A DNA stretch of 64,000 nucleotides from Cyanophora paradoxa CCMP329 (GCA_004431415.1 QPMI01000546.1:116657-180656); one strand, 5' to 3'. Counted from the stretch's first letter, positions 25,305 to 41,076 are shown. Program-made: numbers and translations. The notes: generated from the sequence alone by a model not told the origin.

Positions 25305-27208
25305 ATGGACTGCATGCGCAGCACGCGGTCAAGTGCCGTGCTTGGCCAGAGTGCGATCGAGCTCGTCCACTTCAGCCGCGCTTCTCGGGCCGGGGCGCCA
25401 ACGGAACGTCGTCGGGCCCGTCCGTTGATACAGTTGTGTCTACGGACAGCCCTTTCTTCTTCGCGATGCCCTGCGTCCGCGGCCCGTCGTCAGCTTCGCA
25501 TGCGCACGGCCGCAGAGAGCGCGCGGCTTCCAGGAACGCTACTTGTCGGCAAATCGAACAGATAGTTTTAGGCCGGCAGATCTCTGTTGAACAGCTCAGA
25601 CCAAGCCAGCGAGGCCCGGCAAGCCCGTGCAGACAACGTTTCGCGGAGGAGCTCCGACTCGCTAGGGGGCGGGGCGCTCGTGTGGACGCTGAAACGACCC
25701 CTAGTGCTCTATGTTCGCAAGCCGCTCAAGTCGCAGCGCCCGGCGGCTCGCGGCCCGTCAGCCGTGCTCCAGCGTGCGTTGCTCACCTTCGCGTTTCCGC
25801 TGGGCTGCGGCGGGTGACCTGGCTGTGTAGGCTGCGGATACATCGGAGCCACTCCGGGATCCGAGCCAGAGCCGGGGCTCGGCCCCTTCGCTGCTTCGCA
25901 AGTGCTGTACCCCGCAAGAAAGTGACAAAATGTCAGCGACGCCCCCGGTTTCGATGCGAACGCGGTTTGCGCTCGCCGTGGCGATCCTTCAGGCGAGACG
26001 GCCCGAGTTCCGCGCCCCGGGCGCTCTCGCTCGGCTTCGAGTCTTTCTCGCACAGAGCGAGCTCCGCGACGCGCAAGCGCAGCTTTGTGCCGAGCTGTCT
26101 GAATCGCAGCGCCCCTCGAAGCAGCAGCGGATCTCGTACGCGCACGACACGCCGCGTCCCCAAGCCGCTGAGTTCGTGCCCGCCGGTGCGTGGTCGACGG
26201 CGTTGGCAAGTGTCTGCATATGCTCACTTTTCACTGTTGCAGCTAAGGTGGAGGGGAAGAGCTCCAGCGCTTCCGCTTCTGGGATGGAGGCCGACCGCGA
26301 CGCGGAGGCCGCGGCGCTGCGCGAGGTGCTCCAGAGAGCTGCGCGTATCCTCAGGCAGATGCGGGAGGCCGTCGAGGAGGGCTCGTGCTCGCGCCTTGCC
26401 CGCGGGCTGGATGCTTTCCTCGGTGCCCTTGCCCTGCTCGGACCCGCCGCGCCCGCTTGGCGTTGACCCTTTCCGCGTCGATCAGACTTGCTTCGAGATG
26501 TTCAGCTTCAGGCGTCCCAATCCGGACCGCCTCCGCTCCAATGGCGCGCCTCCAAGAACAGCGACGGCCGCGCACACGCACCCGTGGACGTCGAGGCCCT
26601 GTCCGAGGAGATCGCCGAGTTCTCCAGGTCTGCTGCACTGTAGCTCCGTGTTACTCGCTGGCCGACGCGGCGCGCAGGTGGCTGTTCGACCGCGTCCTCT
26701 CCGCCCCCGCGCCTTTCTGCGAGGGTGGGACGCTCGAGCGCCGCCCCGTTCCCATGCACGCTGAGAGGCGCCGCCGGCAGGCCTGGATCTGCGAGCGCAG
26801 TGGTGCCAGGCGGCTCGGGCGCTGGCCGCCGAGCCGGCGGCCCGGGAGGCCGTCCTCTCCGCGGCTTCCGAGGCGCTCCTCCGCCTGGCCCGGCGGCTCG
26901 CCCTCTTCGCCCCCGTCGCCGGCCCCCCGCCCGCTCCCAGTAGGCCCGGCCCCGCCCCCGGCTCCAGCGCCGTACCCCCCACCCTCTCCGAGCTCGAGCG
27001 GGCCCGTCTCCTCTTCTCGCTCCTGGAGGGCGCAGTGCACCCCTCGAGCCCGGGCGAGGCGTGGACGCGGGACGCTGCCGAGCTCGGGCGCCTGTGCTCC
27101 CGGCCCGACGTGGGGGCCAGAAGCCCAGGCTTCGCGGCGTGCGCGGGGCGGCTCCGCGACCTCGCCCCCCGGCCGCCGGACAGTCTTGTCTCCTCGGACG
27201 AGGTCTGA
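25305..27208 (+). CDS. Hypothetical multi-exon protein, no recognisable domain
   Basis: Plausible helical exons (MEADRDAEAAALREVLQRAARILRQMREAVEEG..LDAFL; VDVEALSEEIAEFSR/WLFDRVL) separated by GT..CAG segments; boundaries uncertain. Confidence 0.35.
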
Positions 27209-27507
27209 AATATGAATATGAAACCTGTAAATTCGAACCGTGAAGCGCTTTAATTTCGTGGCGCCCCAGCGCGCCCCCTGGCCGCCGCGCGCGCGCGCCT
27301 TCAGATCTCTCATCGCCCCCTGGCCGCCGCACGCACCTCTAGGTCTCTCACGTCAGCCAGTCACGTCGAAGTCACGCCAGCCAACCGCGAGCTGTACAGC
27401 GCGCGAGCTAGCGGCTCGGTGCCTCTGTACCCGTCCGCGCGCGTCTGTGGGAGCGTTCGTTTCGCGGAACTCCGGCCTCCTGGGCGCGTGGGGCCGCCGT
27501 GGGGCCG

Positions 27508-30500
27508 ATGAAGCTCAACGTGACGGTCGCTGGAACTTCTTTCGTCGTGCCGTGCGGCGACGGGCAGATTCTCGTCAGCGCTCTCATCGACCTGACGCTC
27601 CAGCGGGCGAAGAAGCGCCTCTCGACGGTGCGCAGCGCATGAACATCATTCTAGAGCCCGAAAGAAGGGTCTCAGCGCGTGCGGAGAGCGCGCCGATCTC
27701 TACTAGATCTGACCGGATATCGATCTCCCGACGTCTTTCCAGGGCTCCGATGCTCCGCTGCGCATTAGACTCCTCCGGAACTCGCATGGAGCGATCCTGG
27801 TTCGTCGGCCCCGCCGCGCCGGTCCGTGCGTATACGCGCACGCAAACGCCGCGCCATTCGCGCGCAGGACGACGAGGATCTGGTCGCCGACGTTTTGAAC
27901 GACAACGAACTCGTCATCGCGGAGGTGGAGGAGGGCTCCGCGCCTGCCCCCGCCGCTCCTCCGCAAGCCGCGGCGTCTCCCGCGACCGCAGCTGCTGCGA
28001 CGACACCGACGTCACCCGTGAGCGCTTCGCGCTATCGCATTGATACGCGATGGGATCACATGGTGCGGCAGCCTGCGCCGCAGCCTCGAGCACCGTTCGA
28101 ATTCCAGCCGGCCTCTGGCGGCCCCGAATTCCAGGTTTATCTCCGCTCTCTTTTTGGCCGGCTGCATCTTAGAGGGTGCAGCAGCCACAGCAGGCGCCGC
28201 CGGCCCCCGGGCCTTTCGTCTTCAGCGCTGGCGGGCGCGCTCCCCAGGTATTTGTACCGGTACCCCTGCCCCTGCCTCCGCTTGTTCTGAGCCGCGGGAT
28301 CGCATCTAGACTCCACCCCAGCAGCCGGCCGCAGGGCAGCCGGGTCAGCAGCAGCAGACGCCCCCAGCGCCCGGGACTTTCGCGTTCAGCTTTGGCGGGA
28401 GCGCCCCCCAGGTGCTTGTACCCCTGTCCCTGCCCACGGACCTCTCTCTGACGGGGAGGCTTGTACCCGGCGCGCAGCAGGGCACGCCGCCCGGCGGCCG
28501 AGGGCAGGGGGCGGAGCAAGCGCCGGCCCAGCAGCCGCGGGAGGAGGAGGAAGACGATCTGTACGGGGACGGGGGCGGGGAGCCCATGCAGGACGAGGAA
28601 GACGAGGAGGAAGAGGACGAGGAGGGCGACGAGGACGAGGAGGGAAGCGATGACGAGGAGGAGGACGAAGAAGGCTATGACGAGGAGGAGGAGGAATACG
28701 GCGAGGACGAGGACGAGGAGGAGGAGGGGGAGGAGGAGGTGGCCCCCAGGATCTAGAGCGCGCGATGGGATCCACTTCTTCTGACGCGTCGTTCAGGGAT
28801 ACGAGCCGGAGCCGCCATTCGGGTGCCCTTCGTGCGGGAACCCTTCGTGCGGCAGGCGCGCCGAGGAGGAGGAAGAGGAGGAGGAAGAGCAAGGTGGGAA
28901 CTCTGACGGCTCGCTGCCCCGGCCCCGCTCTCCCCGACCCGCGGGGCGGCAGGCGCCGCCGCCGGGGGACCGGCCGCGGCTCGGCCGGCGGCGGCGGCGG
29001 CCGGCGGGCGGATCCGCTTCCGGCGCTGGTGGAGGCGTGGCCTGGCGGGCCGATCGACGTGTACGCTCTCCTGTGCCCCGCGGCTCGGACCCGGAGCGCG
29101 CCGCCGAGCGCGAGCTCGCGGCGCCGCGGCCAACGCCGGCCGCCGAGCTGCGGCGGCACATCGGCGCGCTCGCCCGCCAGTTTCACCCCGACAAGGTTCG
29201 CGGCTGATTCGTTCCGATGCCGCCCGGCCGGTGGCGCTGCTGACCGGCCCGCGGCCCGTCCCCGCAGTTCCTGCAGGTCCACGGGGGCGTGCTGCCGCCG
29301 GGCGCCGTGCTGATCGCCAGCGCCCGGGCACGGGCCGTGTGCGAGGTGCATTCCCCTTAGATCCCCGCCCCGCCCCGCCCCGCTCCCACACCAAGGCGCG
29401 CCCCTCTGACCACCGGACCCGGACGATCCCCGCAGGCCCTCGTCATGGCCCGCGAGCTCCTCGTCGACGGGTACGTGCCCACTCGCGAGCTTTCTAGCCC
29501 CTCGCGCCCTTCGCCCGGCTCAAGGGGGTCTGCTTGCGCAGGAAGCGCGTGAGCGTCCTCGGGCGCCCCTCGGTCAACCTCGCCGAGTACAAGGGGCTCC
29601 TCAGTGCGTGTCTCGTCCCCCTGCTTCTCAGCTCCGCCTGCCCCTGCGGCTCACCCGCGCCGGGGGGCGCCGCGCCGCAGGGACCGCCCTCCGGACGCGC
29701 GCGGCGAGGCCGCGCAAGTGCGGGTGCGTCGCGCAGTCGTGCGGGGCGTGGTGCGCGTGCCGCGGCTGCCACGCCCCGGCGGCCGCGGCGGTGCCCGCGG
29801 CCCGCGCAAACGCCGGCCAGTTCGAGACCGTCTCCTTCCGCGTGCGCCCCCGATGGCGTTCTCTCGCACCGCGAAATCGGTTTTGCGGCTCACTCTCGCG
29901 GGGGCAGGTGAAGACGCTGGCCGGGGCGGCGAGCGTGGCGGTCCGCCTGCCCCGCACGGCCCTCGTGCGCGACATCGACCGCTTCGCCGCCGCGCTCGCC
30001 CCCGGCCCCCGGTCCCGCCCCGCCCCACGCCCGCCGCTCCGCCGTTCTGCCCCATCCCGTTTTTCTGACACCCATCTCTGGACCGCAGGGCGGCGGGGGG
30101 CGGCCAGTATGTCCGCCACGGCCGCACGCTCGGCCCCGAGCAGACCCTCTTCTGTGCGCCTCTTCTGGGTCTGTGAGCCGAAGACGCAGACTGATGCCGG
30201 CTGCAGCGGCGGGCATCCAAGAGGGGGAGACCCTCGTCTACATCGTCGGCGGGAGCGGCCCCGGTGCCCTTCTCCGATCTTCCTTCGTTCTCCTTCGCCG
30301 GCTGACCGCCGGCGGCGAGCAGCGCCGCGGGCGCCGGCGCGGCGGAACCCGGCGGCCGGCGACGACGGCGTGCTGTACCACGAGAGCCCCTTCGCGGCGC
30401 ACGCCGAGGCCTGGACTGCGGGGCTCGACGGCCCAGGCGCCGGCGAGGAGATCGGGGCCGGGGCCGGCTCGCTGCGGCTGGTGGTGACGGACGGGACGGG

Positions 30501-33500
30501 GCGGGCGCCCCCGCAGCCCCTCGTCGTCTCCCGCACCGTCTCCCTCGCCCACCTCCGCGAGGCGCGCTCGCTCGAAGGCGGCGCCGCGGCCCGCGCGCCC
30601 CCTTCCCGGCTCTCATTCGCGTCGGCGCGGCCTCAGGTCGCTGCGCGCATGGTGGTGCCCGGTGGCGGGGAGCCCCCGCCGGGGCGCGGCGTCCACCTCT
30701 ACACCCGGTCCGCGTCCGTCTCCTCGGCGCGGCCCGAACGCCAGCCTGGCTAACATGCATATGGCCGCCGCCTCCGCTCCAGGGAGATGGCGCTGGACGC
30801 GGACGAGGACCGGGCGCGCCTGCCCCTCTCCGCCTGGGGCCTCGCCAGCAACGACGAGGTCCGCCGTACCCGGCTGCGCGCGTTCGGATCACCTGATCCG
30901 ACCTGGCGCCTCATCTGAGCAGATCATCGCCATCCCGTACTCCTCGGAGCCGATCCTGCGGCGGGGCCCCGCCGCCGCCGCCGCCGCAGAGTACAAGGGC
31001 GCCGCCGGGGAAGACGATGAGCCGGAGCGCGCCCCCGCGGCCCCGTCACCGCCGCCGCCGGCGGCCGCGCCCCCCGCGGCGCGCCCCAGGCCGGCGAACA
31101 GCGACTCTGGGGCGGGCGCACGGGCCTCTTCGCGGCGTCGCCCTTCTGGCAGCCGGCGAGCGCGCGGCAGACGCCGGCCGGCGTCGCCTGCCTCCTCGCC
31201 TCCCTCTACGTCGTCTCCGTCGCCGCCCAGAACGGCACCGCCGGCGGCGGCGGCGGCGGGGAGGGCGAGGGTGAGGGCGAGGGCGAGGGCGGGGGCGCCG
31301 GGGCCCCTCCCTCCCGCCGCCCGCGCCTCGGTCGCCGTCGCGCGGCTGCTGCGCCTCTCGCGCCTCCCGCCGGCGGCCGCGGCGCTGGGCTCGGTGCTGC
31401 GGGGGGCGGCGCTGGGCGACGCGGGGCGCGGGGCGCTCGCGGAGGGCCTCTGGCGGGCCTTCCGGGCCCTCTCGCCGCCCTCGGTCCGGGGCGAGGCGCT
31501 CTTCGAGCGGAGCCAGGCGCTGCTGGCCTGGCTCCTCCGCGCGGCGGAGGGCCCCGAGGAGGAGGCCGAGGCCCGCGCCGTCGCGGCGGCCCTCGTGCGG
31601 CTCGACCTCTCGTGCCCCCTCAGCAGCGCCCGCGTCGTGCGGCCGGCCGCCGTGGACGGCGACCCCGCGGCGCCCGTCTTCAGCCACGGGGCGGCCTCGG
31701 AGCGGCTGCCCTGCGACGTCCCCGCCGCCTCGGGCTCGCTCCGCCTCTCCGGCGACGACGCGGCGCGTCTGGTGGACCTGCCGGCGCGGCACCCCGTCAG
31801 CCGCGCCCTCCTCGCCCACCCCGGCCTCTCCTGCCCCGTCCTCTTCTGCGAGGCGCTCCTCCCCGGCGCCGCCGAGCGCGCCGCGCTCCGGCGGCAGCTC
31901 CTCGGGGGCGAGGCCGCCGACGAGGCGGCCGCCGCCCTCGCCGCGCTCTCGGGCCCCGCGCCCCCCGCCCCGCTCGACGCCGCCGCGCTGGACGCCGAGC
32001 TGCGCCGCTCGGCGCCGTGGCTCTGCCTCAAGCCGACGCTTGCGCTGAAGGGCGCGGTGCGCTGGCCCTGCGTGACCCTCTACGTGGGCGAGTTTCTGGA
32101 CGAGTCGGCGGGGCCCCTCTGCTCCGTCGCCGTCGGCCGCGGCAAGGGCGGCGGGGTCCGCTTACGCTTCCCCCCGCTGCAAAACTCCTTACTGCTTCCT
32201 TCTGACCCGAGGAGCGCAGCCCAACAACACGGTGCTCTTCGTGCCGGTGCCCGGCGTCGAGGCCAACATCGACCCCGACGACCTCGCCCGCGCCGTGCGC
32301 CCGCCTTCGATTTAGGAGTCTGAGCCCCTCCTGATCATGAGCGGTCGGCAGCTGGGAGGGGCGGCAAGCGAGGCGGGCGGGCGGCTCGACGAGCGGCCGG
32401 CCCGCGAGGCGCGCCTCCCCCGACCCTACGCGCGCCCCGCTCAGCCTCTCGCTCCCCGCCCCCGCCCGCGCAGGCGGTGCTGGCGCTGCTGGACGTCTCG
32501 GACTCGATGGCGCTCCCCTGGGACACCACCGCCTCCCCGGGCGGCTCCGGCCCGCCCCTCAGCGCCCCGCCCCCAGCCTCTTCCTCCCCGCCGCTCACGC
32601 GGCCCGCTTCCGCGCAGAGGCGGGGACGATGAGCCGCATGGACGCCGTGAAGGCCCTCTTCCACGCCTTCGCCAACCGCACCATGGCCCGCCCCGCCCCG
32701 CCCCGCCTAAGACGCGCCTAAGACCCCGCCTAAGACTTTAGACTCGGGCGCAAGGGGGATCTGAGATAAGAAGGCGGCCTCAGATGATAAGCTGAGAATC
32801 AAAACGGGGCGCACGCGCCTCCCCGCCCCACCCCGCCCCGCGCACGTCCGCCCGCCCGTGCGACGGCGCGCGCAGGCGTACGACCTGTGCCACGAGGTCG
32901 GCCTCGTCCTCTTCGGCGAGAACGCGCGCCCGCCCCGCCCCTCCCCGCCCCTCCCCCCGATGAGACGGCGGCGGGGAGGCCGACGCCGGCTCGGGCGTGC
33001 GCGCAGGTGAAGACGACGTGCCCGCTCACGCCGGCGCTGGAGGCCTTCAAGCTCCACGTCGACAACGCGCGCCCCCTCTCCCCTCCCCCACCCCACCCCC
33101 CTCCTCCTCCTCCGGCCCCTAGGCCTCGATCTGACTTGGTCTCTCGGGGGCGGGGCGGCAGGCGAGCGTGCAGCGGGGCACGCGCATCTTCGACGCCCTC
33201 CAGGTACCCCCATCCTCCTCCTCCTTGCCCCCGCGCCTTCCCCTCGATCGGACACTGCCCGGCCAGCGCGCGCTGCGGGAGCTGGAGAGCGCCTCCGCCG
33301 CCGCCCGCGCCCGCGGCGCCCCGCCCTTCTTCCGGTGACCCCAACCTCTAGCTGAATCTCTAGATCTCCTTCAGCCACAGAGACGATAAATATCATGAGC
33401 TCTTCGGAGCATCGCGCGTCTTTTTCTAAAGCTCGCGCCCCCGCGCACCCCCCAGCCCGGCGCCACCTCCTCTAGATTCGAGCCCTCTGAGCCGCGCCCG

Positions 33501-35905
33501 CGGGCAGGCGGGTGCTGGTGTTCACGGACGGGGCGGACACGGGCTCGAGCGCGGACCCCTTCGAGCTCTGCCGCCTCCTCGCCGCCGCCCGCGTCGCCGT
33601 CGACGCCGTCCTCCTCGGTCCGCCCCCGCCCCGCCCAGCCCCTTGGCCTCCTCCAGCTCTCCCTGCGGCCCTCCGTCCCGCGCCTCCTCCTGCTCCCCCC
33701 CTCACCTGGGGGCAGGGCCGGCCGGGGAGACGGACGCCGACCTGAAGGCCCTCGTCCACGCCACCGGCGGGCCCGCCCCGCCCCGCCCCGCCCCGCCCAG
33801 CGTGGGCACCCGGCCTGAGCCGCCCCGCTCGGGCCGGGCAGGTACTGCTTCCGCCCGGGGAACCTCCCCGAGGCCATGCGCCTCTTCGAGAACGAGTGCG
33901 CCCGCCTCGCCCCCGGAGCCCGCGCCCGACGGGCGCCTCCGATTCTAGCTCTAAGCGCGCTCTACATTTAGCTCTGAGCTGTGAAGCGTCTGCAACTCTA
34001 AGCTTTTAAGCCTCCCCCGCTCACTTCTCCCGCTCCTCTCACGCCGGCCCGGCCCCGCAGGTGCGTCCTGCAGTACGAGGGGCGCGCGAACGCCGCCGCC
34101 CCCACCGCCGCCCCCGCCGTCCCCGGCACCCGCGCCGAGGTCCGGCCGCCCTCCCCTCCCCTCTCCTATCACCTCTCACCGCCGCCGCAGTTCGCGGCCT
34201 TCGCGACCCGGCCCGACGACCGGGACCCGCAGCGGCGCCCGCCCCCGCAGCTTTCCGTGAGCCCGGTGGGGCAGAGGCTCGCCCCGCGCGCTGAGCTGAG
34301 CTGGCGGGGGCCGGCGGGGTCAGGCGCGGGTGCAGCCGCTGGAGCGGACGGTGGGGAGCGCGGCGGCGCACAACGCGCCGGGGAGGGCGGGGGACCTCCC
34401 CTCGCGCCGCCGCCTCCAGCGCATCCTCCGCGAGGCCGCCCACTACCATGCGCGCCCCGGCCCCGGCCCCGGCCCCAGGCCCCCGCCCCCTCCTCGCCGG
34501 CTCACGCGTACGCGGGGGGCGCAGCGGGAGCCGCACGGGCGCATCCACGTCTTCCCCTGCGAGAGCGACCTCACCTTCTGGCAGGCCCGCCCCCGCCCCC
34601 GGCCCCCCCCCCCGGCCCCCCGCCTTCCTTTTTCGCGAGGCTTGGCGGCGCAGGCGCTGCTGGAGGGCCCCGAGGGTTCGCCCTACGCCGGCGGCACCTT
34701 CCTCCTCTACGTTCGCTTCCCCGACGCCTACCCCTGGCCCCCCCCCCCCCCCCCCCCCCCTCCCCCGCCTCTCTCCGACTGTACCCCTCTCTGACGGGGG
34801 TACAGGCGGCGCCCGAGGTGCGGTTCGTGACGCCAATCTACCACTGCAACGGCGCGCCCGGCCCCGCCGCCTCGCATATAACGCCTCCGGCCGCCCCCCT
34901 TTGAGCCGCCCCCTCATGCGCAGTGAACTCGGCGGGGCGGGTCTGCCACTCGGTCTTCGACCGCAACTGGACGCCCGACACCTCCACGCGCACCGTAGGC
35001 CCCGCCACCCCAGCCTCCCCCCCTCCCGACCCTTTCTCACATCTGTGCCCCCGGGCAGGTGCTGGACTGCGTGTACGGGCTGCTGCTGGAGCCGGAGCCC
35101 GACGACCCCCTCGACTCCACCGCCGCCGCCCAGTACCACGCCCAGGTCCCTTACCCCCCCCCCCCCCCCCCCCCCTCCCCTCCGCCCTCTCTTTCTTTCT
35201 GAAGGGGCGGGCAGTACCACGCGTACGTGGAGGCGGCGGTCGCCACCACCCGCGTGCGCCCCCGCCCCGCCCGCGCCCCTCGTTGCCTCGCTCGCGCGCC
35301 TCGCCTAGGCCTCCGGCTGACGCCTCGGCTCGGCGCGGCGCAGGAGAAGGCGGGGAAGACGGTGGCGCAGTGGCGCGCCGAGCTCCTCGCCGCCGGCCCG
35401 CCGCCCCGGGCGCCCGCCCCGTGCGCCCGCGCCGCCCCGCCCCGACTGACCCTGGGCCGAGGCCTCCCAGGGCCTGATGAGCTGAGGGGGCGGGGCGGGG
35501 GCAGGGCCGGAGGAGGAGCCGCCGGGGGACCTGGTGTGCCCCATCACGGGCGCCCTCTTCGTCGACCCCGTCCTCTCCCGCCCCTCGTCCGCACTCCGCG
35601 CCCGGGCCCCCTCCCCCGGCCCCCGAGCGCGCTGATCGGGGGCGGCGCGGGGCCAGGGGTGTGACGTACGAGCGGGGGGCGTTGCGGGAGCACATCGCGC
35701 GGGCGCAGCGCGAGGGGCGCCCGGCCCTCGACCCCGTCACCCGCCAGGCGCCCCTCCCCCCCCTCCCCCCTCCCTCCCCCCCTCCCCCCTGACGTGGACG
35801 CGCGCCGCGGGGCAGGCGATCTCGCTGCGGGACCTCATCCCGAACCGGGCGGCGCGGGACCTCGCGCAGCGCTGGCGCGCCCAGCACCCGGGCGCCCCCG
35901 CCTAG
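27508..35905 (+). CDS. Multi-exon multidomain protein: Par3/HAL-N-like, FxF repeats, acidic tract, J-domain, Cys cluster, two ubiquitin-like domains, VWA, UBC (E2), U-box (E3)
   Basis: MKLNVTVAGTSFVVPCGDG..DDEDLVADVLNDNELVIAEV; LARQFHPDK (HPD 29184-29192); KCGCVAQSCGAWCACRGCH; FRVKTLAG..GRTLGPEQTLFSAGIQEGETLVYIV; VWA LLDVSDSM..SRMDAVKALF..GTRIFDAL..LVFTDGAD; UBC WQALLEGPEGSPYAGGTF..IYHCNVNSAGRVCHS (Cys 34944-34946); U-box LVCPITGALFVDPV..SGVTYER..DPVTRQ..LIPN; TAG 35903-35905. Continuity requires a few 1-nt homopolymer corrections. Confidence 0.8.
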
Positions 35906-35960
35906 CCCGCCCCGGCCCCGGCCCCGCCCCGTACGTATATATATACCCGCCCCCCGCCGG

Positions 35961-38900
35961 AGATTCCGGTACCCCGGAAAATTGAGCGAAGGCCCGCGAG
36001 CGAGTAAGCCGGCGCAGTGGGGCTTCCCAAACGCGGGTGCCTGCTAGCACTGCACGTGGCTGGTCCCAAAACTCGCGCGGCCGACGCTCTGTAGCTTAGT
36101 TCAACCGAACGCGAGCTGCAGCCTCCCCCAGCCGCCCAGCCGCCTTCCCATGGCGGCAAGTCCCGCCAAAGAGGCGGCGACCACGTCGGAAGCGCCCCAG
36201 GACGCCCCGACGTCCCGTCCTCTCCTCACGGTCGCCTTTTTGAATGTCGAAAGCCTCGCAGGCATCTCTCGCCGCATCTGGCTCGCAGGCTGGCTCAAAC
36301 GCACCAAAGTCGACGTCCTCGGCATCATAGACCACCGACTCCGCCCGCGCCAGATCGCGCACTTCGCCCAGCGCATCGACTCCGCCTGGCGAGTGCTCAT
36401 TCCACCGGCCGCAGAGCTCAAACCCAACATCTGGAGCAGAGGAACGGGCTTCCTCGTCCGCAAGAACATCCCGGCTCTCCCGGGAGCGACAGCGACGCTC
36501 GTCCCCCTCCCCCCCACGCCCGGCGTCGCGCCGCACGACCTCACAGTCCTGCGCCTAGAGAGCGATACGAACGCGTACCATATCATCTGTATATACGCGC
36601 CTAACGACGTTGCCTCGCAGAAGCGCCTCACGGAGGGCGCAGCACTAGCGATCGACTCCCTGGCGATCCCCCCGGATGACGCCCTCATCCTCGGAGGCGA
36701 TCTCAACGCCTACGCACTCCCGCACCTAGAAAGCCGGCGCCGCGCCGGTGCCCCGCCCCCGTTCGGGCACTGGAAAACTCTCCTCGCAGACCTGAACCTG
36801 TTCGATGAGCACCGGCGCTGGCGCCCCCGTGACCGCATCTACACGCGATGGCACCGCAAGACGAACCGCTTCGACCAGAACGCGGCGCGCCTCGACCACG
36901 TCTTCCTCTCAGCTGATCTGTGCGTAGCCGCAGAACGCGTCGGCATCCTGCGCACGGCGGGAGCGGCCCCACGCCCCGACCACGACGCCGTCTACGCGCG
37001 CCTGCACACCGACGCCGTGCTGGAGCCCCGCAAGTCCCGCTTCCGGCTCCTCGATAGCGTCCTTCGCCTGCCCGACTTCCAGAGGGAAGTCCGGAAGATC
37101 ACGGCAGCCGCGCTCCCGCGCCAGCCGGCCCGTAACACCGCAGACTGGCAACGCTGGCTCGATGACCTCTTCGCCGAATACAGAGAGATCGCCCGCCACT
37201 CCCGCCCGCACGCTGACTCGGCCCGCCGCGAAGCGCGCGATACGATTGCAGGCCTCTGGCGCGACGCGGAACAGGCGCTCCAAGACGCCGAGCTCAACAC
37301 TACCGAAGAAGACTATGTCATCGCCGACATGGGCTACCTCGCCGTTCAGGAAGCCGCGCTTGACGCCGCCGACGCCGCTCTTAGCTCCCGCAAGCACCTA
37401 GAGCGCTCCCTAGCGCACGCGCACACCGTCCCCCCGGACCTAGCCCGCCACATCAAGTACTCCTCGGCTAACAACCGCATGCGCTCCCTACAGCCGTACC
37501 CCCCTAGCGAGGGTACCCCCGCGGCGACGACGGAGGAGGACATGGCGGCCTACGCCTGCGCATACTACACCGAGCTCCTCGCGGCCCAGCGCCCGCTCCC
37601 CCCCGACCTCCCGGCGACCCCGCCGCAGCCCCAGCCGCTGCGGTCGGACCCGCCGGCTCCGCCAGTTCCACGGGCGCAAGAGCATTCCCATGCTCGCCCA
37701 GCTACACCCGCGGGGTCTGAGCCAGACGGCGCTCGCTCGCATGCATCGGGGTCTGAGCCGGACGACGCTCGCCCGAGGACGACCACAGGGCCCTCGGGCC
37801 CGGTGGACGTGACCCCGGAAGCCGCCGAGGCTTTCCCGGCGGTGGTGGCCAAGCTCCGCGCTGCCTACCTCCTTACGCCTGAGGACCCCCTCTCCCACGA
37901 GGAGGCGGAGCTCCTCTCCCGCTGCACTGACACAGCGCCCCCGCACTTGTGCCCTCCGATGCGCGCCCCCTATACGGTCGGCGAAGTCGAGACATGCCTT
38001 AAAGACATGAATAAGTCAACGGCGCCGGGCGAGGACGGCCTCACCGTTAAATTCTATCTCACGTTCTGGGACATCCTCGGCCCAATAGTCACGGAGAGCT
38101 ACAACTGCGCACGGGCCCTGGGCACCCTTTCCGAGCGTCAGCGCACGGGCCTGATTCAACTGCTCTATAAGAAGGGCGACCGCGATAAGATACAGAACTG
38201 GCGCCCGATCACCCTCCTGCAAATAGACCGCCGCCTACTCGGGGCGGTCCTAGCCAAGCGCATTGCACCCGCATGCCAGCACACGATCAGCTCCGTGCAG
38301 ACGGGCTTTATGCAGGACCGCTGTGGCTCAGACAATGTCTGGCAGATGCAAGCTGTTATCCGTCATGCGGACCGGCAGGGCATGCACGTAGTCATTCTGA
38401 ACACCGACTTCGAAAAAGCGTACGACCGTGTGGAGCACCTCTATGCACTCCGCGTCCTCGCAGTGCAGGGATTCCCACTGGAGTTCCTAGCCGACGTCCG
38501 CGCCGTCACTAAAGGCGCGCGATCAAAACTGATGATCAACGGGACCATCTTCCCCATCATTATCCCAGTGACACGCAGCGCGCTTCAGGGCGACCCGTTC
38601 GCCTGTATGTTCTTCAACACGCAACAGGAGCCCACCACACGCGACATCCTCGCCGACCCGGAAATTACCGGTGTACCCGCCCCCCGAGAACCCCGGATCG
38701 AATCCAAGCTAGTCCAATATGCAGACGACGCAGCGCACTCACTCAAGATAGATCACCGCAGCCCCGATCCGGGCCGCCCGGTCAAGAAGACCATAGCTAA
38801 GTATCAGAAAGCGGGGAAATACAACGGCTCCTCGCTCAACCTGGGCAAAACCGAGGGCATGCTGGCGGGCGCGGCGGCACCAGCAAAGCGACCCGGCCAG

Positions 38901-41076
38901 CCAACGGCGCTCCCGGAATGGACCCAGTCAATCCCGATCCGCTGGGTCAAGACGACGTCCACGCTGGGCATCCCCCTCGGCCCACATGGTGACTTCGATG
39001 CTCGCCCCTATTGGGCTAAGCGAGTTGACGGCATGCGCAGCCGCCGCGCACGCTGGAACCTGCGAGGGATGCGCGTCCACCAGCGCGTATACGTCGCCAC
39101 GGCCATCATAGCGTCTGTCAACATGTACGCCGCCGCCTTCCTCCCGTGCCCCCCGGCGTCTCTCCAGGAGATGAAAGACGAATACTGGGCCGCAATCTGG
39201 CCCCCGTCCGCAGATGCTCCCGCGCAACGGCGCCGCACACGAGGCAGAATCTCACGCGCGCGCGCCGTGCTCCCGCTGTCCCACGGCGGCATCGGCGCCC
39301 TAGACATTGAGAGCCGCCTCCTGGCCCAAGCAGGCACGTACATCCGCGCGCTCTGCGACCCCTCGTTCGCCGTCTGGAAGCTCTTCGCAGCGGAGGACGT
39401 GCCGGACCTTGTACCGAAGAAGTACGCCGCGGCCGCAGCGGCCCTCGGGCTCTGCGCGCTAGGCGCCGACCTCCGCTTCAAACCGTACGCTTCTCTCCTT
39501 CCGAAACAAGGGCCCCTGGCCCCAGCCATACGTACACTCAGCCTCCTGCGCCCCCAAGCAGATGGCCCGCTGCCGCTACGCCAACCGCCCTACCGAGCCC
39601 TCTCCTCGCTCCCGCTCACCCGGGACAGCTTCCGTGCCGAGCCCCTCTGGCTCAACCCGATCCTCGCCCCCCCCGGCCAGACCTGGGGCCTGCTCGCCGT
39701 CGACGTACCCCTCGCCGCGAAGCTCACGTCTGTGTACCAGATCACGGGCCCGGCCCCGCAGAACCTCTCCCCGGCGGCGTATGCCCGCCTCAACGAGATC
39801 CGCACCCAGGTGCGACGGCGGGCCTCCCAGCTCGGCCTAGACCCGATTGATACCCCGCCCCGCGCCGTCCTCCCCGGCTCTGACCCTCGCCTTTGGCTCA
39901 CTGCCGCCCAGCCGGAAGCAGGGGCGGGCCCCCGCAGGCCGGCCTCCGGCCCCGTCCTCCTCACGTCACCAGGAAACCCACCCCTGGGCAGCGTCGCCCC
40001 CACCCTCCCGGACGGCACGGTGCTTGCCCCAAGAGGCCCGCCGGCCCCCCTCCCGGCCGCCCCCGCGCTCCTGCCCCGAGCCCTGATCATCACGGTCCCC
40101 CCGGGATCCGCCAAACAGAAAGCCCGGTGGCCCGAAGGCCGCCGAGTCTCCGCGGGCCGCCGCGATCGCGCACCCTGGATCCACGAAGGGCTCACGTATC
40201 GCACCCCCCTCGGCCCCCGCCCTTGGCAGCCGCCGCCGCCCCCGCGGCAGCCGCCGCCGCCCCCGCGCCGATCGCCGCTCCCGCGCCCGCCCCGGGCCCG
40301 GCCCCCGCCCCTGGCCCCGCCCCGGCCAACATCACGCTCGCCAACTACCAGGCCACCCAGAAGCTCCTCACCGAGCTCACGGCGGCCATCGGCGGCCCCG
40401 CCGCCGTCGAGGCCTACCTCGCAGGCCGCCGCGCCGCGGCGGAGGACAACGCAGCGGCGTAGACGCCCTAGGATCTTCCTAGAACTAAGGCCTCCGGCCA
40501 CCTCCTTTTCTTTCTTTCTTTCTCCTTAGTCACTCTGTCGTACCAGAGCGGCCCTACGGCCTCGCTCTCCTTTTAAGGGTGAGACACTCAGCTGTCCTGT
40601 ATGCTCTGTGAAGCAAAGCCAGGCGCCCGCTCACGACCACTGCTCAAGCCACCCACGCCACTCGCCCCGCACCTTAGCCCCGGCCCCGCAGGGCCCCCAC
40701 TTAGCCCGTGCTCACCTCCCTCCTGCGTACCTAGCCCCATCCCGGCTCCCCGGGACACCCGCCCCGCGCCCCTCACGCCCAAAGATAGGGGGATGTGCAA
40801 CCGCCCTAGGCCTGTACTACCCCCCACCCCACCCTACCCCCCCACCCCCCCCAACAGACCACGCACCGCCGACGCGAGCCCAAGTAGGACACCCCGCCCA
40901 AGCTCTCCCCCACCCTGAACGCTTCTAGTTAGCGTCGAAGCGCCTATCCCTGTGTAGCGGCCACAGGTTATGAGCTGACCCAGAGTTCGGCCCAGTCCGA
41001 ACCGGTAGTGCATACGATGAAGTTAGCTAACTGAAAATAACATCATCGCCCAAGAATTGGGCTATCCTGAAAAAAA
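35961..41076 (+). mobile_element. Non-LTR retrotransposon (APE endonuclease + RT, L1/Tx1-like RT), single ORF
   Basis: Exact 15-bp TSD CCCGCCCCCCGCCGG at 35946-35960 and 41077-41091; A7 tail at 41070-41076; intronless long ORF inside. Confidence 0.93.
36150..40529 (+). CDS. APE-type endonuclease / reverse transcriptase polyprotein (true C-terminus may be the shifted frame ending at 40462)
   Basis: EN: FLNVESL, GTGFLV, ICIYAPN, LGGDLN, YTRW..ARLDHVF, PDHDAV; RT: APGEDG, YKKGD..NWRPITLL, QTGFM, DFEKAYDRVEH, QGDP, QYADD, LNLGKT, GGIG..DI. Confidence 0.93.
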   Translation: MAASPAKEAATTSEAPQDAPTSRPLLTVAFLNVESLAGISRRIWLAGWLKRTKVDVLGIIDHRLRPRQIAHFAQRIDSAWRVLIPPAAELKPNIWSRGTGFLVRKNIPALPGATATLVPLPPTPGVAPHDLTVLRLESDTNAYHIICIYAPNDVASQKRLTEGAALAIDSLAIPPDDALILGGDLNAYALPHLESRRRAGAPPPFGHWKTLLADLNLFDEHRRWRPRDRIYTRWHRKTNRFDQNAARLDHVFLSADLCVAAERVGILRTAGAAPRPDHDAVYARLHTDAVLEPRKSRFRLLDSVLRLPDFQREVRKITAAALPRQPARNTADWQRWLDDLFAEYREIARHSRPHADSARREARDTIAGLWRDAEQALQDAELNTTEEDYVIADMGYLAVQEAALDAADAALSSRKHLERSLAHAHTVPPDLARHIKYSSANNRMRSLQPYPPSEGTPAATTEEDMAAYACAYYTELLAAQRPLPPDLPATPPQPQPLRSDPPAPPVPRAQEHSHARPATPAGSEPDGARSHASGSEPDDARPRTTTGPSGPVDVTPEAAEAFPAVVAKLRAAYLLTPEDPLSHEEAELLSRCTDTAPPHLCPPMRAPYTVGEVETCLKDMNKSTAPGEDGLTVKFYLTFWDILGPIVTESYNCARALGTLSERQRTGLIQLLYKKGDRDKIQNWRPITLLQIDRRLLGAVLAKRIAPACQHTISSVQTGFMQDRCGSDNVWQMQAVIRHADRQGMHVVILNTDFEKAYDRVEHLYALRVLAVQGFPLEFLADVRAVTKGARSKLMINGTIFPIIIPVTRSALQGDPFACMFFNTQQEPTTRDILADPEITGVPAPREPRIESKLVQYADDAAHSLKIDHRSPDPGRPVKKTIAKYQKAGKYNGSSLNLGKTEGMLAGAAAPAKRPGQPTALPEWTQSIPIRWVKTTSTLGIPLGPHGDFDARPYWAKRVDGMRSRRARWNLRGMRVHQRVYVATAIIASVNMYAAAFLPCPPASLQEMKDEYWAAIWPPSADAPAQRRRTRGRISRARAVLPLSHGGIGALDIESRLLAQAGTYIRALCDPSFAVWKLFAAEDVPDLVPKKYAAAAAALGLCALGADLRFKPYASLLPKQGPLAPAIRTLSLLRPQADGPLPLRQPPYRALSSLPLTRDSFRAEPLWLNPILAPPGQTWGLLAVDVPLAAKLTSVYQITGPAPQNLSPAAYARLNEIRTQVRRRASQLGLDPIDTPPRAVLPGSDPRLWLTAAQPEAGAGPRRPASGPVLLTSPGNPPLGSVAPTLPDGTVLAPRGPPAPLPAAPALLPRALIITVPPGSAKQKARWPEGRRVSAGRRDRAPWIHEGLTYRTPLGPRPWQPPPPPRQPPPPPRRSPLPRPPRARPPPLAPPRPTSRSPTTRPPRSSSPSSRRPSAAPPPSRPTSQAAAPRRRTTQRRRRPRIFLELRPPATSFSFFLSP

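Follow-up and report, generated by a model that had tools for sequence, protein, structure and literature searches.

The question raised by this locus is whether one gene of Cyanophora paradoxa CCMP329 encodes, on one chain, a protein that recruits Hsp70 clients, ubiquitylates them with its own E2 and E3, and docks at the proteasome. The preliminary description, made from the DNA sequence alone, proposed such a protein at positions 27508-35905 of the window, the whole 64,000-nt stretch that was analyzed.

Gene Model and Expression

The region 27508-35905 is a single gene on the plus strand. The public protein for the locus (P0001; tig00021094_g18116, 1670 aa, uncharacterised) was identified through EukProt accession EP00741_Cyanophora_paradoxa_P018768. 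It maps onto the window with zero mismatches, from the ATG at 27508 to the end of the TAG at 35905, exactly the limits first proposed. The introns of this gene are 50-190 nt long and 11 of the 42 have GC donors; a GC donor in Ubl2, at 30562, was verified by RNA.

The exons were compared with RNA reads as far as 34949. Contigs of spliced RNA, built from three runs belonging to two studies, cover the locus from exon 7, the acidic exon, to 31229 (contig A, which extends 30-53 nt into the 3' end of that exon) and from 31317 to the start of the UBC, plus about 750 nt beyond (contig B). The contig gaps equal the annotated exon sums: 177 nt (in the J-like region), 122, 147, 418+1 and 254 nt. In addition, the share of sampled words found in these runs was 0.39-0.41, where 0.40 is expected with all 43 exons and 0.33 without exons 1-7. 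Exons 1-6 are tied to the remainder solely by frame continuity, word share and homology. The mapping and the spliced contigs together bear out the claim of one gene, as one expressed transcription unit.

Domain Architecture

The features of the gene are collected in Table 1. The domain order that had been read from the DNA was recovered for every element except the J-domain, and the E2 and the U-box E3 do stand in cis beside a MIDAS-type VWA and Ubl domains.

Table 1. Features of the tig00021094_g18116 locus, in window coordinates.
Feature	Position	Strand	Basis
Coding region, tig00021094_g18116	27508-35905	+	43 annotated exons; exact P0001 mapping
Par3/HAL N-terminal-like beta-grasp domain, aa 1-81	27508-27933	+	exons 1-3; Pfam PF12053
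FG-like repeats, 3 tandem exons, each PAPGxFxFSxGGxAPQ	28072-28411	+	sequence and exon map
Acidic Glu/Asp tract exon	28478-28738	+	sequence
Cys-motif exon, FGCPSCGNPSCG then poly-Glu	28797-28893	+	RNA frame logic
J-like region, four exons (28953-29195, 29268-29345, 29436-29470, 29542-29603)	28953-29603	+	RNA and sequence
Second Cys/His cluster, CGCVAQSCGAWCACRGCH	29719-29772	+	sequence
Ubl1, aa 510-590	29818-30256	+	YukD E 1.7e-4, weak ubiquitin match; exons verified by RNA contig A
Ubl2, aa 642-728	30469-30943	+	family alignment; exons verified by RNA contig A
Exon 19, family-conserved middle region	30923-32155	+	RNA and tblastn
Internal U-box/RING-like domain, aa 945-1024	31592-31831	+	predicted fold
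Small beta-barrel (Tudor/SH3-like), aa 1095-1161, just N-terminal to VWA	32042-32363	+	VIA-align
VWA with complete MIDAS	32480-33851	+	Pfam VWA and VWA_2; exon sums match RNA contig B
UBC (E2) core	34420-35238	+	Pfam UQ_con, tblastn
Linker helix after UBC	35344-35395	+	tblastn of P0011 to 35338-35400, 67% identity
C-terminal U-box, aa 1590-1665	35522-35887	+	Pfam, family alignment
Stop codon TAG	35903-35905	+	end of tig00021094_g18116

The N-terminal domain matches Par3_HAL_N_term (PF12053) over profile positions 1-81 of 83 (E 2.9e-16, 59.9 bits vs a cutoff of 21), and single-exon fragments match it as well. The acidic tract proper occupies 28535-28738. Two Cys clusters are present where one had been noted; the first has the pattern C-x2-C-x4-C, and the second gives a weak zf-CHY match (E 0.0044) that lies below the cutoff. 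Both ubiquitin-like domains align with the beta-grasp pair of the family, Ubl1 with its second beta-grasp domain and Ubl2 with the PF00240 ubiquitin domain of the relatives; the Pfam matches of Ubl1 itself are weak.

Given the family alignment, AlphaFold2 modelled the internal U-box-like domain at a pLDDT of 82. Its VIA-align Z scores are 6.2-6.7 to Ring1b, LubX U-box 2 and the CHIP U-box, its best Foldseek matches are RING/U-box, and one relative (P0016) has a zf-Nse match (E 4e-7) at the same position. The small beta-barrel reaches a middling VIA-align Z of about 5 to Tudor domains.

The VWA (PF00092, E 1.8e-07, 32 bits vs a cutoff of 23.8) has its MIDAS in DVSDS (DxSxS, 32492-32506), the Thr of RGTRIF (33174-33191) and the Asp of FTDGAD (33521-33538); residues D1183, S1185, S1187, T1267 and D1304 are invariant across 16 relatives. 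The UBC core matches UQ_con (PF00179) at E 6.8e-25 (87.7 bits vs a cutoff of 27), with an HCN motif at 34842-34850 and the catalytic Cys codon at 34944-34946 (aa 1522). The terminal U-box (PF04564, E 8.1e-12, 45.6 bits vs a cutoff of 21.4) contains the conserved CP(I/L) and DPV motifs, with DLVCPITGALFVDPV aligned to the relatives.

A Conserved Family

Sequence searches identified 21 relatives, with E values down to 4e-102; the best collinear relatives share 34-44% identity over 88-99% of the C-terminal 521 residues. A full-length alignment of 16 members is collinear over the Ubl domains, middle region, VWA, UBC and U-box. The order Ubl-Ubl-(helical plus internal U-box-like)-VWA-UBC-U-box was found in a sponge, a fish, a choanoflagellate, amoebozoans, a dinoflagellate and metagenomes, the named sources being Oscarella, Plectropomus, Pelomyxa, Salpingoeca, Mastigamoeba and Biecheleria. 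The Cyanophora protein carries the signature E2 motif of the family, YHCN...GR(V/I)CHS, together with its middle-region motifs. Judged by sequence comparison, the Ubl-VWA-UBC-U-box core is an old, widespread and conserved but functionally unstudied eukaryotic family. VWA-UBC fusions do occur among uncharacterised proteins, as the preliminary description stated; the full combination, for which it named no precedent, has its core conserved across eukaryotes.

For example, the proteins of Oscarella lobularis (P0006, 'uncharacterized protein'), Plectropomus leopardus (P0019, LOC121951668), Salpingoeca macrocollata (P0013) and Pelomyxa schiedti (P0021, 'ubiquitin-conjugating enzyme E2') share the collinearity from the first Ubl to the U-box, the MIDAS, the HCN and Cys-His residues, the U-box residues and the internal U-box-like domain. 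They differ from the Cyanophora protein in having no DnaJ and in lacking a ~430-residue insert that separates the first beta-grasp domain from Ubl1. This insert, which appears specific to Cyanophora among the sampled relatives, contains the FG-like repeats, the acidic tract, both Cys clusters and the HPD-containing J-like stretch. Mb_UBOXa (Marin) is described as an ancient protein with VWA and U-box found in choanoflagellates and protists (PMC3087547); judged by that description, it probably belongs with these proteins.

We favor, with a probability of about three in four, the reading that the locus is one expressed gene for a ~1670-residue protein of this family that would act as follows. 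In the family layout, a Par3-N-like beta-grasp domain or SAM and two Ubls precede a helical region that encloses an internal U-box-like domain; a small beta-barrel, a VWA with intact MIDAS and a UBC core with catalytic Cys come next, and most members end in a C-terminal U-box (E3). E1 would load ubiquitin onto the E2 cysteine of the chain; the U-box, tethered ~30 residues C-terminal to the E2, would activate its discharge, either in cis or across the chains of an oligomer; and the MIDAS face of the VWA may provide the contact to a substrate or adaptor. An in-cis E2-E3 ligase, as predicted here, is well supported by the architecture.

The J-like Region and Proposed Coupling to Hsp70

A chaperone-recruiting J-domain is weakly supported. 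The HPDK motif (29184-29195) is real and, as in J-domain proteins (DnaJ/Hsp40, PF00226), follows an amphipathic, basic helix; the RNA-corrected frame also places DVYALL, a DxYxxL-like motif resembling helix I, upstream of it. Our own DnaJ J-domain profile gave 5-7 bits on helix II plus HPDK, a score reached by 6 of 3000 flank shuffles, and local hhalign gave a probability of 53% (P 1.4e-4) over 26 columns; these P-values are optimistic because the region was chosen for its HPD. AlphaFold2, run on the single sequence, placed low-confidence helices on both sides of the HPD (pLDDT 53).

However, the domain itself, as first described, was not confirmed. Pfam DnaJ was not matched by the whole protein (E<=0.1) or by aa 373-470 (E<=10), in queries without helix I, which the public model puts in another frame. 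A PDB sequence search with the region gave no match, an Atlas search placed a DnaJ cluster only at rank 8 (score 0.81), and a fold search with the AlphaFold2 model returned no J-domain. Unlike J-domain proteins, the stretch has a long insert (16 residues) between helices I and II and no recognisable helices III and IV; in global mode the hhalign similarity stops short of helices I, III and IV. Lastly, DnaJ was absent from the precomputed and scanned Pfam domains of all relatives, and therefore the core function of the family cannot depend on Hsp70.

These results bear on the reading of the protein as a quality-control machine, in which a J-domain stimulates Hsp70, clients pass to the in-cis E2-E3, and the Ubl domains and VWA dock at the proteasome. 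Recruitment of Hsp70 clients would rest on a stretch that neither the curated profile, the PDB search nor fold prediction recognised. The Pfam matches of the whole protein included neither a TPR family nor a UIM, nor any further module tied to chaperones or the proteasome. The proposed docking fares no better: querying the PDB by sequence with the VWA gave no close solved relative and no Rpn10, which at the sequence level sets this VWA apart from the Rpn10-type proteasomal ubiquitin receptor. The chaperone-coupled machine is thus doubtful.

N-terminal Modules and Possible Self-assembly

The N-terminal module alternates among relatives between Par3_HAL_N, which also opens P0008 and others, and SAM_TNK. 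Both are self-associating domains. This exchange is consistent with a signalling or defence ligase that polymerises through its Par3-N-like or SAM module, senses a ligand through the VWA and builds ubiquitin chains on the assembly, as in TRAF6/Ubc13-type signalling. A role in innate defence was the alternative offered in the preliminary description, and the results weigh neither for nor against it. The closest solved E2s to the UBC core, Ubc13/UBE2N and UBE2D, and the patchy taxonomic distribution of the family point the same way, but the protein lacks death-fold, TIR and NTPase domains and its neighbourhood offers no evidence; we regard this reading as rather unlikely.

Chemistry of the E2 Core

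The E2 is unusual in two respects. In nearly all members HPN has become HCN, with Cys in place of Pro, and a His comes directly after the catalytic Cys where Cys-Leu is usual. These could mean altered E2 chemistry, and the H-C-N...C-H residues (H1512, N1514, C1522 and H1523, invariant in the 16-member alignment) might bind metal or be redox-regulated. That the core is unconventional to the point of being a non-catalytic, UEV-like scaffold, or of working by altered chemistry, is nevertheless improbable: the catalytic Cys and Asn are themselves invariant, the UBC domains of relatives match UQ_con end to end (E 1e-31 to 1e-37), and a PDB search with the Cyanophora core retrieves active E2s (E 1e-33).

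Integrity of the Reading Frame

The homopolymer frameshifts suspected from the DNA do exist in the window sequence, but the RNA contigs lack them. RNA of all three runs has an additional base at three points, a C after 29019 and a G after 29081 and again after 31108, and the frameshifts are thus single-base differences between genome and RNA, most likely assembly errors. The frame must shift once more, from 0 to 1, within 31230-31316, a GGCGAG-type repeat inside one exon that neither contig bridges. Upstream of it, tblastn of relative P0009 matches frame 0 at 31135-31230 (E 4.9e-12); downstream, contig B has no Met codon over >270 codons.

The RNA-corrected frame restores family-conserved motifs in tblastn with relatives, as does each of two homology-based exon extensions. 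In the UBC, the family motif VRFPDAYPW (34711-34737) is in frame but missing from the public model, and the window sequence has a non-canonical donor after it (34737). In the linker, annotated exon 40 is 18 nt; by homology it runs on to about 35395 and ends at a GC donor, the next exon then begins at 35505, and the exon phases fit the lengthened exon. In addition, 28894-28952 (59 nt) is an intron read through by the public model, by RNA frame logic (piece start 28951).

A locus of two genes, or a decayed gene, with real frameshifts and just the N-terminal product made, would account for the four frame breaks of the window and the contig break at 31230-31316, but is highly improbable, given that three breaks are missing from RNA in every run, the contig break falls on a repeat that was skipped in the read analysis, the gap is 87 nt within a single exon, and the frame beyond it has a third-position GC of 1.0, strong family conservation and no start codon.

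Comparison with Known Ubiquitin Ligases

Read as a predicted in-cis E2-E3 ligase, the Cyanophora protein can be set beside three known systems. First, CHIP/STUB1 is also a U-box E3, and the coupling of Hsp70 to ubiquitylation would be common to both if the J-like stretch works. However, CHIP binds the Hsp70/Hsp90 tails by TPR and uses a separate E2 (UBE2D), whereas the Cyanophora protein has no TPR, carries its E2 on the same chain and has a putative chaperone link. Secondly, the plant RGLG1/2 proteins join a VWA to a RING-class E3 domain and work with Ubc13-type E2s, the class nearest to the Cyanophora E2 core. RGLGs have a copine-like VWA, a separate E2 protein and no Ubl domains, whereas here the E2 is in the chain and Ubl domains are present. 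Third, UBE2O and BIRC6 are reported to be large E2/E3 hybrids that carry a UBC core and need no separate E3 (PMC12818219). The Cyanophora E2 is fused to a canonical U-box plus a second, internal one, whereas these hybrids have neither RING nor U-box, and their other domains are unrelated.

Gene Structure and Expression

The ligase gene is real and expressed, and it is already annotated but uncharacterised. The sequence throughout the locus is 0.70-0.80 GC, and because the window is so GC-rich, the long open frames found in all six frames are uninformative alone. Third-position GC indicated coding on the plus strand from about 27500 to about 35900 with the frame switching every 50-250 nt, which is the pattern of many short exons. 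Since the exons are short, Pfam searches of single stop-free genomic pieces gave only fragments of Par3_HAL_N_term, UQ_con and U-box. An attempt to enumerate GT-AG exon chains blindly, constrained by length and open frame, produced 67 solutions and could not discriminate among them, because stop codons are so few in GC-rich DNA. It was replaced by mapping of the public protein P0001 (1670 aa), which was identified, at 100% identity over the query, when the large middle exon was searched exhaustively with HMMER. The other matches were two weak, short ones and two to repeat proteins, and the latter were dismissed. P0001 is found in EukProt as EP00741_Cyanophora_paradoxa_P018768 and P018767, isoforms t2 and t1 of gene tig00021094_g18116. 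Its 43 exons align to the window with no mismatches, beginning with the ATG at 27508 and ending with the TAG at 35903-35905. The span that the preliminary description had assigned to a single gene is therefore exact. No paralogue was found elsewhere in the 64-kb window.

The introns are 50-190 nt in length (median 69.5). GT donors are used in 31 of the 42 introns and GC donors, which read GCGCGC or GCCCGC, in the other 11. GC donors usually represent about 1% of eukaryotic introns, so a share of about a quarter is far above the norm. At least 8 of the 11 are supported by the lengths of RNA contigs.

Seven sequencing runs contained 0.37-0.41 of the 31-mers sampled from 27400-36000. The expected share is 0.40 with all 43 exons present as spliced RNA and 0.33 without exons 1-7, and the observed share equals the expectation for all 43. 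Contigs from three of these runs, RNA-like and representing two studies, and from one DNA-like run were compared with 28950-34949. Each RNA-like run yielded the same two spliced contigs, A and B, and the DNA-like run yielded unspliced pieces, as expected. Contig A (1628-1688 nt) begins inside the acidic exon, 127-150 nt before position 28951. In contig B (2541-2610 nt), the first piece extends from 31317/31342 to 32154, later pieces are 33507-33616 and 34324-34445, and GT..AG joints occur at 32154>32219 and 32294>32352. The contig extends 740-760 nt past the 34324-34445 piece, the length required to arrive at the stop codon (633-702 nt of exons). The contig stretches between the listed pieces match sums of annotated small exons (177, 122, 147, 418+1 and 254 nt, ambiguous boundary letters counted). 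Thus, exons 9-33 of the public model are confirmed, several GC donors included.

The preceding plus-strand gene ends near 27205, about 300 nt before the ATG, and the retrotransposon frame that follows is separate, beginning about 250 nt past the stop codon. Three consecutive FG-like repeat exons, to judge from their sequence, look like a tandem exon duplication, and their motif resembles the FxFG repeats of nucleoporins.

Features of the locus (window positions) and domains of P0001 (aa)
Feature	Position	Strand	Basis or remark
Upstream gene, last coding exon	26765-27205	+	High third-position GC in frame 1
FG-like repeat exons, one copy each, ending ..GG.APQ	28072-28134, 28185-28247, 28310-28411	+	Sequence
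Contig A pieces	28951-29193, 29681-29841, 29908-30010, 30322-30559, 30921-31229	+	RNA contigs
Non-LTR (LINE-type) retrotransposon ORF, 1459 aa, intact-looking	36150-40529	+	Exo_endo_phos endonuclease and RVT_1 reverse transcriptase domains
Par3_HAL_N_term	aa 1-81		Pfam, 2.9e-16
YukD-type beta-grasp, weak match	aa 517-584		Pfam
VWA	aa 1181-1355		Pfam, 1.8e-07
UQ_con	aa 1451-1575		Pfam, 6.8e-25
U-box	aa 1590-1665		Pfam, 8.1e-12

Corrections to the Public Model

The RNA of all three RNA-like runs carries one extra base at each of three places: C after 29019, G after 29081 and G after 31108. The frame changes there, which the preliminary description had attributed to homopolymers, are not real breaks in the gene, as the RNA supplies the missing base. 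The affected sites lie in short G or C runs. Adding the first two bases and removing 28894-28952 as an intron gives the reading AAAGG...PIDVYALLCPAGSDPER...HPDK. A stop at 28901-28903 in frame 1 makes this splice necessary, and the start of a contig piece at 28951 is consistent with it, whereas the public model translates the intron in a different frame. Once the third base is added, 31109-31230 in frame 0 reads ...ASPFWQPASARQTPAGVACLLASLYVVSVAAQ and matches a motif conserved in the family (tblastn of the relative P0009, E 4.9e-12). Thus, the Ser/Arg/Pro-rich reading of this segment in the public model is wrong.

The frame must also shift from 0 to 1 somewhere within 31230-31316, a GGCGAG-type repeat where contigs A and B both end. 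This shift was taken as an assembly indel for three reasons. First, the downstream frame has a third-position GC of 1.0. Secondly, it is conserved in relatives. Third, it contains no Met for more than 270 codons. Further bases are probably missing within 31230-31316 and near 34737.

The public model also skips conserved coding sequence at two or three places. For example, its exon 35 ends at 34710, and the following 27 nt encode in-frame VRFPDAYPW, the FPxxYP segment found in every relative; in the window sequence, this segment is followed by a non-canonical donor. Exon 40, given 18 nt in the model, extends in frame as VAQWRAELLAA, which is 67% identical to the relative P0011, and a GC donor at 35396 and an acceptor at 35504 preserve the phase. 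The assembly probably carries homopolymer indels inside genes that corrupt public protein models, and single-base indels of this type are a lesson for the annotation of this genome.

Domains and Family

When the C-terminal 521 residues were searched against proteins of 918-2922 aa, 21 relatives were identified (E 4e-102 to 3e-51), with sources including Oscarella lobularis, Plectropomus leopardus, Pelomyxa schiedti, Salpingoeca macrocollata, Mastigamoeba balamuthi and Biecheleria cincta. Pfam scans indicate a common plan: an N-terminal module of Par3-N-like, OTU1-UBXL-like or SAM_TNK type, a second beta-grasp, a ubiquitin-family domain, a conserved middle of about 330 residues, VWA, UQ_con and U-box. 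The two ubiquitin-like domains of the Cyanophora protein, Ubl1 and Ubl2, align with the two inner beta-grasp domains of the family, so the pair is a family trait. Ubl1 was rejected as a processed modifier, its VGG end not being kept in relatives. Some members vary the plan. In P0024 and P0026 (about 1800 aa) the sole U-box is internal and the E2 is at the protein end, and P0020, from Mastigamoeba, continues past the E2 with a RING finger and a RabGAP-TBC domain.

In an alignment of 16 members, the MIDAS residues D1183, S1185, S1187, T1267 and D1304 and the E2 active-site residues H1512, N1514, C1522 and H1523 are invariant; the U-box residues of the Cyanophora protein are also intact. The Pro of the E2 HPN motif is Cys in nearly all of these members. 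The E2 site has an invariant or near-invariant His-Cys-Asn plus Cys-His in place of His-Pro-Asn plus Cys-Leu (34842-34850, 34944-34949), with four candidate metal or redox ligands surrounding the catalytic cysteine. The closest solved structures to the E2 core are Ubc13/UBE2N and UBE2D (E about 1e-33). The relative P0008 served as query, since nine residues of this region are missing from P0001. No solved structure is closely related to the VWA.

The middle region was modelled by AlphaFold2 with the family alignment (pLDDT 82). Residues 94-173 of the model (aa 945-1024) match RING, U-box and SP-RING domains almost exclusively, with VIA-align Z scores of 6.2-6.7 to Ring1b, LubX U-box 2 and CHIP, and the top Foldseek rows are also of the RING/U-box class. 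In addition, the relative P0016 has a zf-Nse match (4e-7) at the place of this predicted internal U-box. A putative small Tudor/SH3-like barrel follows, with a middling VIA-align Z of about 5.

No functional study of the family was found in the searchable literature. The one related paper there, Marin 2010 (PMC3087547), described an 'ancient' VWA and U-box gene in Monosiga, Naegleria and other protists, which, matched by description alone, is probably this family. The ligase gene is the Cyanophora form of this conserved family of E2-E3 fusions, which apparently nobody has studied.

The J-like Stretch

The HPDK-containing J-like stretch lies within an insert of about 430 residues between the first beta-grasp and Ubl1, present only in Cyanophora among the sampled relatives, none of which carries DnaJ. 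No homologues were found for the middle exon among proteins of 336-1069 aa or for aa 283-800; the insert is therefore without a detectable relative in the searched length range.

The preliminary description had placed a J-domain here. Pfam gave no DnaJ match on the whole of P0001 or on aa 373-470 at E<=10, and phmmer gave no PDB sequence match. An Atlas search placed a DnaJ cluster only at rank 8 (score 0.81), and the single-sequence AlphaFold2 model (pLDDT 53) had no J-domain fold match in Foldseek. For the Cyanophora protein, the database, curated-profile and fold searches took the public protein or single exons as queries. Helix I, where the public model is in the wrong frame, was thus absent from the J-domain queries. 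For comparison with the RNA-corrected peptide, a profile was made from 81 DnaJ J-domains, most of them proteobacterial. HMMER gave 5.1 bits, covering helix II and HPDK. With HPDK fixed and the flanks shuffled, the real score was reached in 6 of 3000 shuffles, and hhalign in local mode gave a probability of 53% (P 1.4e-4, 26 columns), chance figures that do not come from a blind choice, as the stretch was selected for its HPD; global mode gave nothing. Thus, the HPD context resembles J-domain helix II beyond chance, and the remainder of the domain is unrecognisable. The Pfam, PDB, Atlas and fold tests were all negative or uninformative. From these sequence comparisons, a functional J-domain is possible at somewhat less than even odds.

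Proposed Mechanism and Comparison with Known Systems

From the established behaviour of E2 enzymes, E1 would charge Cys1522 with ubiquitin. Activation of the E2~Ub, in cis or across chains, may then come from the tethered U-box at the C-terminus, with the internal U-box perhaps contributing. As in other VWA domains, an acidic residue of a substrate or adaptor would be bound at the MIDAS face, and the N-terminal module, Par3-N-like or SAM, may make the enzyme oligomeric. Any docking at the proteasome or coupling to Hsp70 is speculative. The quality-control machine proposed in the preliminary description depends on the weakest element, the J-like stretch, and the full Hsp70-client model is less likely than a functional J-domain. 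We assign a probability of roughly one in five to a bolder reading, an unstudied family of covalent E2-U-box fusions with an internal U-box, a MIDAS VWA and a polymerising N-terminus, whose Cyanophora member gained a working, highly divergent J-domain. If so, a single chain would couple Hsp70 directly to ubiquitylation with E1 as the sole added requirement.

The family ranges from glaucophytes to sponges and fish with invariant catalytic and metal-site residues and is of interest to ubiquitin specialists. As a compact system, it lends itself to studies of E2 activation by an E3 in cis and of the part that a MIDAS VWA domain plays in substrate choice, and the Cyanophora member adds a possible chaperone link. 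To our knowledge, the textbook ubiquitin cascade has no canonical E2 core and canonical U-box E3 in one natural chain. The E2/E3 hybrids that we know of, UBE2O and BIRC6, have no RING or U-box, whereas this family joins an E2 core to a U-box. With a working J-domain, the Cyanophora protein would have a CHIP-like function, reached by a different route than in CHIP.
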